A stretch of 64,000 nt of DNA. It comes from Dimorphilus gyrociliatus (taxonomy: Eukaryota > Animalia > Annelida). Made by a program: the position numbers and the translations under genes. The notes under the pieces are model-generated. The model had not been told where the DNA came from and did no database searches. It saw only the letters and a list, made by a program, of their open reading frames with translations. Of the stretch, positions 11,770 through 26,152 are shown piece after piece; the first letter of the stretch is position 1; each line of letters starts with the position of its first letter. Where the stretch lies: positions 1 through 64,000 of the forward strand of contig CAJFCJ010000033.1 of assembly GCA_904063045.1 (NCBI GenBank), read 5' to 3'.

Positions 11770-14700
11770 ATGGCGTAAGTAAACGATTAAAATCTGTTTT
11801 TATTGTCTTTTTACAGATAATAGAGAGCATTTATTTATTTAAATTGAAATGTTTACATTTATCTAAAAATTGAATAATAACTTTAAAAGATATTTGGGTT
11901 TTTTCGCCAATGTCCGAGAAAATGGACACGAATAATGTGAATGTGAACATTTTATTATGCTGTTTTTTTAATTTAACGTCGTAGAAATCATTTAGTAAAT
12001 ATCTTTTATAATATTTGATTGTTGTTTTTACAGCCCTGCATTAGATCCAAGAGAAAGGAATCGTTTAAATGTCGTTTTGAGCGAAGTGGTTGAGATGTTT
12101 GTAAAGGACCATGTAGAAGACCAGCATTTCAAGATGTTTGGAACAATTGGTATTGAATTAGATAATAAGGATGCAGTTGTTTTTCATTTTGAAAGAGATA
12201 TTTTGAATGCAAGCCGTAAAAAGGCGGGTTCTGCCCCTTATGGTCTAGATATCAAGCAGGAGAGAGATTTGGCGACACAGTCTAATGCTGTTAGAGCGGC
12301 CGTTAAGGTTGAAAAGCCTAAGGTTAAGAAACCGGAAAATGACATTATCGAAGAGCGTCCGTATGCTGAGGTAGTTATTTAATAATTATGTATTTAATAA
12401 TTTATTAGTATCCCATCGATATTTAGTTTGACGAATTGCCATCGTTGAGAGAAGAACATACAATTAATGAGGAAAAAGCTACACCGAAGAAAAAGATTTT
12501 CTCTTGCAATATGTGTTCGCAAGTGTTCGACACGAAAGTTGAACTGCATAATCACGAAAAGCTTCATAGCGGTAAGAAAGAGATAGTCTCCTCAACATTA
12601 CAGTTATAAAGGAGTAATTGTATTTTTAGAATCGGCCGAAAGCGCTACAACTGACGACGGAAATGATATTGTTAATCCGACATCAACCGTTGATAATTCG
12701 GCTTCTGCTACGGCTGCTTCTGTTAACCCAGCTATTAGTGACAGTGCTATAGCTGAGGCTGCTTCCATTGCTGTTCGTGAATCAAAGGTTTGCAAATTTT
12801 ATGCACTAAAAACTGTCGAAGGCGACGTTACTCGAATACATACAGCATGTACTGCATATGGGATGTATAAAACATTATTTTGTTAGGGGTCGGGATCGAA
12901 GAAGCATGCTTGTTCCTATTGTTCAAAAGCTTTTACTACAGCGTACAACCTTACCAACCATATTCGAACCCATACTGGTATGTGATTTATTTATTACTTA
13001 TCAGTTGACAAAGAATATCATTGCAATTTAATTAGATAACGTAGACTAGGATATTTGTATTAAAACGAGATTACCTATCGACAGTTTTTGACTGCATTAC
13101 ATTCAGTAATAACGTATTTTTTTAAACAAATTTTTCTAACTAATAGAAAGATTTGGATAAGTATAAGCATGTTTGTACAACATGTGGAAAGAGATTCCAA
13201 AGAACTGATCATCTAAAAAATCATATTCGAATTCATACAGGTAAAATGATATAATGATATAATGCTTAGTTAAAACTGCGAAGAATTTCGTCTCGTAATC
13301 GAATGATTAATTTTTTTATGTTCGCATTTGTTTAATGGCTTATTTTGCCAAGAGTCTAAATATAATCTAGTGTCCATAAGCTGATAATTATTAGACAAAG
13401 ACGCAGATTCCCAACTTAGTTGCTATTTTATAAACTGAAAAGATTTTTATTATTCTGAATGTAGGAAAATCATTTTAAAAGGAAATTGGAAGATCTATTT
13501 AAAAAAACAGGAAAAAATTCATTGTTTATCTTACTTTCCCTTACCGGAATATATTTTACCTGCCTCTCGCTATTCGATAACTATTGTATTTACTATCCCA
13601 CCATCTTTATAAAATTTAAAGAAAAGAAAGCTATTTCTAAGTAATTTTCTTCTAATTTTGATGAATAATTAAAAAAAATTTAATTGAATAGGATAGGATT
13701 TACTGGTATAAAACTATCAAAGATAGACAGTATACGGACGACTATTAATCGTTAGAATGGAAATTTTTCTAAATATTTGTTTTCTTTAAATTTCTAATTG
13801 TGACAAGATAATTTCAAATTTTCCTACGCAAAAAAGTACGATATTTCATCATTTCTTGCCAATTTAATTGATATATTCTATGTTTATCAACTTTTTAAAT
13901 TTTACGCTTATTCCTATTTTTCTACATTATATTTAAAAATAGAAAAACATCTACGCTTTTGTAAGGCTCATTATTTATTTCCCTCTACTTTTTTCCTTAC
14001 TTTATATTTCTCTTTTAGGAGATAAGATTAACGTATTTCAATCTATATTTAAATCTATTCTCAACTGTGGTATAGCATATTTAGTACATATAGTACGTAC
14101 ATATAAAAGAACGTAAATAATAATTTCTTTTTTTTTTTGTTAATTATAAAAAGATAAAATATGAACTTTAGCCGCCTGTAATTTGTTTTTTTTTAAAAGC
14201 TATTTTAGTCTTTGTATCTAAGGATTAAGCATAAAAAGAATTCGTACAAGTGTCAAATTCTACAAAAAACTCGACCACTTCATAATAGCTTCACTTTTTT
14301 AAAACAAAGAATGAATTTATTTTTCGATTGACTTTCTATAGTAGTTTTACAATATAGTTTTGGCAGCAAAGAATGAATAAATGGGGAAAAACAGTGGATA
14401 TTTTAAAATTTAACATTATACTCTAAGATATTTTAAATATTTCAGTACAAAAAACTAAAAGGTACTAACGTGATCCTTAATATTCTAAAGCAAGATTTAG
14501 ACATTGTTGTATAAAAATAATTTTTCTAATTATTTCATTCAATTTCTAAACTATTGTTTGACTTATTAGGGACTTGGATAAGTTTATAGATAAAAGAAAA
14601 ATATATTACATATATAAACTATACTGTATATAATGTATATACTTTAAAATTTTTAAATCGAAAGTTATTTTAAATGAGTGAACATCTTGCTTCAATGAAT

Positions 14701-26152: not shown

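Follow-up and report, generated by a model that had tools for sequence, protein, structure and literature searches.

Gene layout and finger exons of the locus

We analyzed the first 64,000 nucleotides of contig 33 (CAJFCJ010000033.1) of the annelid Dimorphilus gyrociliatus (GenBank assembly GCA_904063045.1; 77.9 Mb, 349 contigs), a stretch that we refer to as the window, and focused on an array of C2H2 zinc-finger exons that it contains. The window is AT-rich (GC content, 26 to 40%). A six-frame motif scan recovered 31 canonical C2H2 fingers, all on the plus strand between positions 5690 and 26143, and inspection of the surrounding splice sites showed that every finger lies in a short open frame with splice-site-like flanks. 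The array itself comprises about 27 single-finger exons at 13151-26152. In our best explanation, the locus is a genuine Krueppel-type C2H2 zinc-finger locus of restricted lineage distribution, organized as one long gene or as two tandem genes, that has grown by duplication of exon-plus-intron units and whose young exons are probably spliced mainly to their immediate neighbors. We give this explanation as a whole a probability of roughly 0.6.

The array lies downstream of a set of exons that are partly covered by a public gene model. This model, P0001 (1,419 amino acids [aa]), was recovered by an exhaustive protein search and fuses the three tandem paralogous zinc-finger genes of the window (4759-12982) into one. 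Its boundaries match the upstream exons as we read them (Table 1), but it ends by intron read-through after finger 2, and the downstream array is absent from it. All three tandem genes have in common an orphan N-terminal domain. A Pfam scan of the N-terminal exons of the three genes assigned this domain to no family and detected no KRAB, ZAD, BTB, SCAN, or SET domain. An AlphaFold2 (AF2) model of the domain consists of a helix, a beta-hairpin, and a second helix (moderate confidence; pLDDT, 69), and a Foldseek search with the model yielded no PDB fold match at an E value of ≤0.001.

The N-terminal domain also has few relatives in sequence space. Among 1.84 billion representatives, the N-terminal exon had two true relatives, namely, P0001 from its own genome and P0002, a 125-aa fragment from a related species (63% identity). 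Two further matches were repetitive proteins and were rejected as spurious. Comparison of the stored part of the protein with the genome detected the domain nowhere outside the locus, and a protein atlas search with the domain returned weak rows for bacterial domains of unknown function and nothing else. A search of the protein collections with the N-terminal exon retrieved no transcript-derived protein for the locus.

Within the array, the exons are built to a common pattern. Each begins directly after AG with G(T/C/A/G)-GAR-AAR-CC and ends with CAY-ACN-G immediately before the GT of the donor, such that the introns are in phase 1 and interrupt the HTGEKP linker between the first and second bases of its Gly codon. 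Because the exons end in HTG and the next ones begin with EKP(F/Y), consecutive splicing would yield canonical TGEKP-type linkers. Fingers of the form C-X2-C-X12-H-X3-5-H score above the cutoff of the Pfam zf-C2H2 family (PF00096); for instance, one exon peptide scored 31.8 bits against a cutoff of 25.2, and 18 exons of the locus rank among the 150 best PF00096 matches in the genome. The motif scan, the splice sites, and Pfam thus bear out what a preliminary description of this DNA, made from the sequence alone, had reported, i.e., one finger per exon with a shared cut in the linker Gly. That description had listed twenty 84-nucleotide (nt) exons plus one of 87 nt and one of 90 nt; the latter two were recovered as such, but our count of 84-nt units is 21, with canonical AG and GT in 19.

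Two properties of these exons bear on how they might be joined. First, the lengths of the internal exons are all multiples of 3, and all are in phase 1/1; any pair of donor and acceptor restores a GGN Gly codon, except with acceptors 23020 and 26061 (Val). The earlier claim that any subset of exons can be skipped without a frameshift is arithmetically right for the internal exons. Second, the acceptors of the two exon blocks described below are A-rich with poor pyrimidine tracts, again as first described (55% A and 41% pyrimidine at positions -20 to -4, compared with 59% pyrimidine for the unique exons), and these 15 block acceptors are mutual duplicates and hence nonindependent samples. Simple repeats occur at two places in the array, with an (AGAGAC)n microsatellite of ∼17 copies at 25679-25779, located between the final two finger exons, and a repeat of the TATA/TATG/TGTG type at 23282-23423, in the intron after 23103.

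Table 1. Exons, decayed exons, and intron boxes of the zinc-finger locus, with damaged exons of the contig L001 from a related species
Feature	Position	Strand	Remarks
Putative first coding exon, 5 nt	11770-11774	+	ATGGC, then GTAAGT; in frame with exon 2; a reading of the sequence
Exon 2, orphan N-terminal domain	12034-12370	+	∼60 aa; helix, beta-hairpin, helix
Exon 3, finger 1	12427-12571	+	Phase-1 donor at end; boundaries as in P0001
Exon 4, Ala/Ser-rich spacer	12630-12787	+	Agrees with P0001
Exon 5, finger 2	12887-12977	+	P0001 terminates just past it by intron read-through (HTGM-stop)
90-nt exon, finger 3, start of array	13151-13240	+	Ortholog at L001 4592-4693, 71% aa identity
Pseudoexon, decayed 15616-type copy	14925-14996	+	Followed by a 15616-type intron; 14998-15455 aligns to 20689-21142
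Block A, seven 84-nt exons	15229, 15434, 15616, 15933, 16135, 16338, 16646 (span, 15229-16729)	+	Introns of 98 to 233 nt
Intron boxes of block A, 26 nt	15341-15366, 15547-15572, 15728-15753, 16045-16070, 16248-16273, 16451-16476	+	13 boxes in blocks A and B
Unique 84-nt exons	17264, 18570, 18986, 23020, 23591, 23882	+	
Finger exon, alternative or true terminal exon, or dead	17264-17353	+	Strong acceptor; no GT donor; immediate stop (HTD-stop)
ATG-initiated finger-exon remnant	18228-18291	+	Phase-1 GTAGGT donor at end; candidate start exon of a second gene or decayed exon
Two unique 84-nt finger exons	18570-18653, 18986-19069	+	
Block B, eight 84-nt exons	20212, 20417, 20600, 20917, 21121, 21323, 21525, 21835 (span, 20212-21918)	+	One 202-bp unit beyond block A
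Further intron boxes, block B	20324-20349, 20530-20555, 20712-20737, 21031-21056, 21233-21258, 21435-21460, 21951-21976	+	
Pseudoexon after block B	22039-22122	+	In-frame stop; no donor
Four unique finger exons	22465-22551, 23020-23103, 23591-23674, 23882-23965	+	The first is 87 nt, H-X4-H
3' finger exon, candidate terminal exon	24547-24674	+	Runs into stop at 24672-24674; lacks a phase-1 donor
3' finger exon with its own stop	25154-25296	+	Stop at 25294-25296; weak phase-1 GTTTAG donor at 25256 would give an alternative 102-nt internal exon
Last finger exon	26061-26152	+	Pyrimidine-rich acceptor; stop at 26150-26152; AATAAA at 26530
Damaged exon	L001 ∼6258		Lacks AG and part of the helix
Damaged exon	L001 ∼6637		Frameshifts
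Damaged exon	L001 6864-6956		Donor lost; HTRM-stop
Ortholog of 17264	L001 7102-7185		His lost; no donor

To judge from these sequences, the one-finger-per-exon architecture is inherited, being common to two neighboring paralogues and to the related species. In a neighboring paralogue, each of the two fingers has its own 84-nt-type exon (5673-5756 and 5869-5952). P0002 lies on unspliced Logan contigs of the related species (L001 to L003), and L001, which is 8.8 kb long, carries the orthologous N-terminal exon, fingers 1 to 3 on separate exons, and more single-finger exons with the same linker introns. Elsewhere in the D. gyrociliatus genome, multifinger exons prevail: open frames of 100 to ∼1,000 aa, with fingers spaced 84 nt apart, contain the most similar fingers and the majority of the 150 best zf-C2H2 matches. 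A phase-1 linker intron is occasionally present in other genes; for instance, another zinc-finger gene (L007 2519-2725; G000:C5:1377519-1377725) has a single such intron, between 2581 and 2663, and otherwise contiguous fingers. Thus, the position of the linker intron is not unique to the locus, but an intron at every linker is.

Individual exons have fared differently in the two species. All exons of L001 at the position of block A (L001 6250-7200) are damaged (Table 1), and those at 7812 and 8159 are intact. Because exons at the block A position decayed and later ones are intact within the same architecture, the comparison indicates that the architecture is old, that individual exons turn over fast, and that exon birth and death differed between the two species.

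Duplication and divergence of the exon blocks

The array contains repeats on two scales. Tandem Repeats Finder identified a 202-bp tandem unit that consists of one exon and an intron of ∼118 nt (2.2 to 3.2 copies, 89 to 91% match). On a larger scale, a block of ∼1.6 kb with seven or eight exons is present twice (blocks A and B), with 92 to 95% identity, introns included. For instance, identity was 94.8% between 15209-16359 and 20192-21344 and 92% between 15914-16765 and 21101-21952. The divergence between the two blocks is a mosaic, in that a 379-nt tract without any difference (15604-15982 versus 20588-20966) adjoins clusters of differences in recognition-helix codons. This mosaic suggests that sequence has recently passed between the blocks through gene conversion or unequal exchange.

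The differences between paired exons of the two blocks are concentrated where a finger touches DNA. Positions -1, 2, 3, and 6 of the helix are the canonical DNA-contact positions of C2H2 recognition, and 16 of the 20 amino acid differences between A/B exon pairs fall on them (binomial P = 1.4e-10, with 4 of 27 positions as the expectation). In the first A/B pair, 8 of 84 exon bases are different, compared with 3 of 121 in the following intron. All 15 block exons nevertheless retain the Cys, Cys, Phe, Leu, His, and His residues and are free of stops and frameshifts. Such a concentration at contact residues is the expected outcome of selection for diversified DNA specificity. Together with the retained zinc ligands and core, it speaks for translation of the block exons, either at present or until very recently.

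It is important to note that the order of the blocks could also be read as duplication debris, with one or both blocks unexpressed or untranslated and their regularity simply reflecting recent duplication before decay. The blocks are young at 92 to 95% identity, so that the intactness of their ORFs says little about constraint; there are pseudoexons on the flanks of both blocks, one block A exon has already lost its acceptor, and the public gene model ends upstream of the array. However, neutral decay would not be expected to leave the six finger residues intact in all 15 exons, free of stops and frameshifts, nor to concentrate differences at contact residues at a level that in some pairs exceeds intron divergence, and we consider this reading very improbable.

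In our preferred explanation, the array grows by tandem duplication of the 202-bp unit and of the 1.6-kb multiexon block, followed by gene conversion, and shrinks as exons are lost through splice-site mutation, with selection diversifying the four DNA-contact residues of each finger. The symmetric phase of the exons would be a precondition for this growth by exon units, and its main payoff would be evolutionary, as fingers could be gained or lost with the reading frame kept.

Exon ends, intron helices, and splicing

The sequence rules out one version of a single-isoform outcome, that in which every exon is joined in one ORF, because exons 17264, 24547, and 25154 carry stops. Therefore, some exons are skipped, serve as alternative ends, belong to a second gene, or are dead. 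Other exons show defects of different kinds. Exon 15434 has an acceptor with GG instead of AG, whereas its twin 20417 has AG, and a fragment lies near 16790-16830, in addition to the pseudoexons in Table 1. The ATG of the exon at 18228 is not conserved in the relative, and internal use of this exon would add 83 nt and break the frame.

The stop-bearing exons might form a lola-like 3' end, in which a shared set of upstream exons is spliced to any one of four terminal finger exons (17264, 24547, 25154, or 26061). These four have good acceptors, intact fingers, and stops of their own; three of them lack a usable phase-1 donor, and exons downstream would be coding only if the earlier stop-bearing exons were skipped. 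However, the stop-bearing exons could be dead relics, or one could be the true last exon with relics behind it, and the poly(A) signals are ambiguous, with no canonical one between 24674 and 25898. We regard such a set of alternative ends as possible, though less likely than not.

Exon 17264 could also mark a boundary between two tandem genes. Gene A would then comprise the N-terminal domain, three fingers, and block A and end at 17264-17353, and gene B would start near 18228 and contain 18570, 18986, block B, and the 3' unique exons, with the block duplicated between neighboring genes. The strong acceptor, missing donor, and immediate stop of 17264 would suit the end of a gene, a donorless stop-bearing finger exon is found at the matching place in the relative (L001 6864-6956), and the ATG-initiated ORF near the putative start ends exactly at the phase-1 donor at 18291. 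Yet this start exon resembles a decayed finger exon, its ATG has no counterpart in the relative, and the first canonical AATAAA is at 17980, though an ATTAAA is present at 17684. This division, which our preferred explanation can accommodate, is possible but doubtful.

How the block exons might be joined to each other is bound up with an unusual feature of their introns. Each contains a box of 24 to 26 nt, located 29 to 33 nt past the donor, that is complementary to positions -12 to +14 of the next acceptor, with pairing at 20 to 25 of 26 positions. The energy of this duplex is -18 to -32 kcal/mol in the block introns, compared with -5 to -16 kcal/mol in nonblock introns. Folded whole, the block introns had minimum free energy (MFE) z-scores of -3.1 to -4.4 (0 of 200 shuffles were as stable), and the two control introns had z-scores of +1.0 and +1.3. 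Further, compensatory changes follow the next exon, with CGC/GCG in the intron from 15434 to 15616, CAC/GTG from 15616 to 15933, and TAC/GTG from 15933 to 16135. The combination AAGG/CCTT occurs only ahead of the exon type whose start includes CCTTTT, and ATGG/CCAT occurs elsewhere.

These introns thus resemble known structured introns in having paired segments near both ends, greater stability than expected by chance, and a weak pyrimidine tract. A probable branch site (CTAAT) lies ∼21 nt upstream of the AG, at the foot of the helix, and the helix geometry is predicted to place the region of the 5' splice site beside it. The helix would link the part of a short intron nearest the donor with the region that contains the following branch site and 3' splice site. 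Short helix-bridged introns would fit ordered neighbor-to-neighbor splicing at least as well as skipping. We infer that the array is expressed and that the young block exons, with their poor A-rich acceptors, are probably spliced mainly to their immediate neighbors with the aid of the intron helix. Isoform diversity would then probably come chiefly from stop-bearing alternative end exons and from dropped defective exons rather than from free combinatorial skipping.

Several observations weigh against this explanation. The box-by-acceptor matrix is many-to-many, with nearly any pair within the blocks giving -15 to -36 kcal/mol, roughly the strength of pairing with the adjacent acceptor, and such promiscuous boxes could equally loop out exons. 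The box after 21608 is decayed, and that after 21918 faces a dead exon, so part of the box pattern appears to have been carried along by duplication. The helix also buries the AG of the 3' splice site, and a buried AG inhibits splicing in many systems. Moreover, the clustering of differences at contact residues may be explained in part by gene conversion shuffling older variants rather than by fresh positive selection.

The preliminary description had instead proposed a transcription-factor diversifier, in which any subset of the finger exons could be skipped, in a regulated or stochastic manner, and one gene would thereby yield many strings of fingers. The exons do have the structural capacity to be skipped in frame, as far as exon phases, restored Gly codons, and weak acceptors can tell. 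The promiscuous boxes would allow distant pairing to loop out intervening exons, and the fingers differ at DNA-contact residues, so that subsets would differ in target preference. In IKZF1 (Ikaros), inclusion or skipping of N-terminal finger exons changes DNA binding (PMC12896614). However, symmetric phase is expected from tandem exon duplication alone, which yields it automatically. In addition, the block introns are short, a condition under which intron definition favors the joining of neighbors; the compensatory changes track the next exon in line; and the relative lets such exons decay without conservation. We therefore consider a diversifier of this kind unlikely. A related scenario, in which a box pairs stochastically with a nonadjacent acceptor and loops out fingers to give a population of in-frame transcription factors by a Dscam-like helix logic, appears to us very improbable.

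Relation to known systems and other features of the window

One finger per exon is found in WT1 and TFIIIA, and the present locus resembles these genes and IKZF1 in having C2H2 fingers on separate exons. Those genes have 4 to 9 fingers on ancient, unique exons, with no recent amplification of exon units. Here, in contrast, the finger exons number ∼27, and 15 belong to two blocks that are young and nearly identical, with a helix at the block junctions.

Vertebrate KRAB-ZNF genes and PRDM9 gain and lose 84-nt units in the manner of a minisatellite and change rapidly at positions -1, 2, 3, and 6. The likeness lies in the tandem Krueppel-type fingers, the TGEKP linkers, and the change at contact positions. 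However, the array of those genes is in one exon and the repeat is 84 bp, whereas here the repeat is an exon plus an intron (∼202 bp), and the Pfam scan of the N-terminal exons detected no KRAB, SET, or other known effector domain.

The Drosophila genes lola and mod(mdg4) share with the locus several finger exons with their own stops downstream of common exons, but no BTB domain was detected here, and most exons are internal and symmetric rather than alternative ends. As in Dscam1, intronic sequence in a tandem exon array is complementary to sites beside the 3' splice sites. In Dscam1, a single docking site is combined with a selector for each variant, which leads to mutually exclusive choice. 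In the locus, each block intron has its own box, pairing is many-to-many, and the frame is kept with all exons included, which is not an arrangement of docking site and selectors.

A parallel to the proposed role of the helices may be found in teleost introns with (AC)m-(GT)n repeats, in which a structure that bridges the intron has been reported to enforce correct pairing of the splice sites and to make U2AF2 dispensable (PMC4691745). A second parallel is offered by the yeast intron helices of the RP51B type cited in that paper. Complementary segments near opposite intron ends, a stable bridge, and a 3' end without a normal pyrimidine tract are common to the teleost introns and those studied here, as is the proposed role in the correct pairing of neighboring splice sites. 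Here, however, the AG and the initial 12 to 14 coding bases of the next exon are part of the 3' arm, and the helix is formed by unique sequence of 24 to 26 nt rather than by a simple repeat and has been found in this one gene only.

Our literature search found no relevant prior account of arrays with one finger per exon or of zinc-finger genes with tandemly duplicated exons. The locus is novel in its scale (∼27 exons), in the young amplification of its exon units, and in its junction helices. Poly-zinc-finger arrays are classic fast-evolving DNA readers, and the well-studied cases evolve as 84-bp minisatellites in a single exon. In this locus, the evolving unit is an exon plus an intron, such that splice-site change, in addition to recombination, can add, remove, or silence fingers, and each finger would be individually addressable by the splicing machinery. 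The locus thus makes it testable, in a small and tractable genome, whether the DNA specificity of a transcription factor is diversified by exon choice. Its helix-bridged, pyrimidine-poor introns would also provide a compact natural case of RNA structure ordering splice-site pairing among near-identical tandem exons.

The window contains further features on the minus strand, downstream of the array. Two large sushi/CCP-repeat genes (27575-31905 and 38840-43160) have very long exons, with open frames of 833 and 1,232 aa. Their 3' exons are near-identical (ORFs 27575-28021 and 38840-39400), which points to a second recent tandem duplication in the window. Lastly, open frames at 61078-62068 resemble, by eye only, a Cdc25-type (rhodanese-fold) phosphatase.

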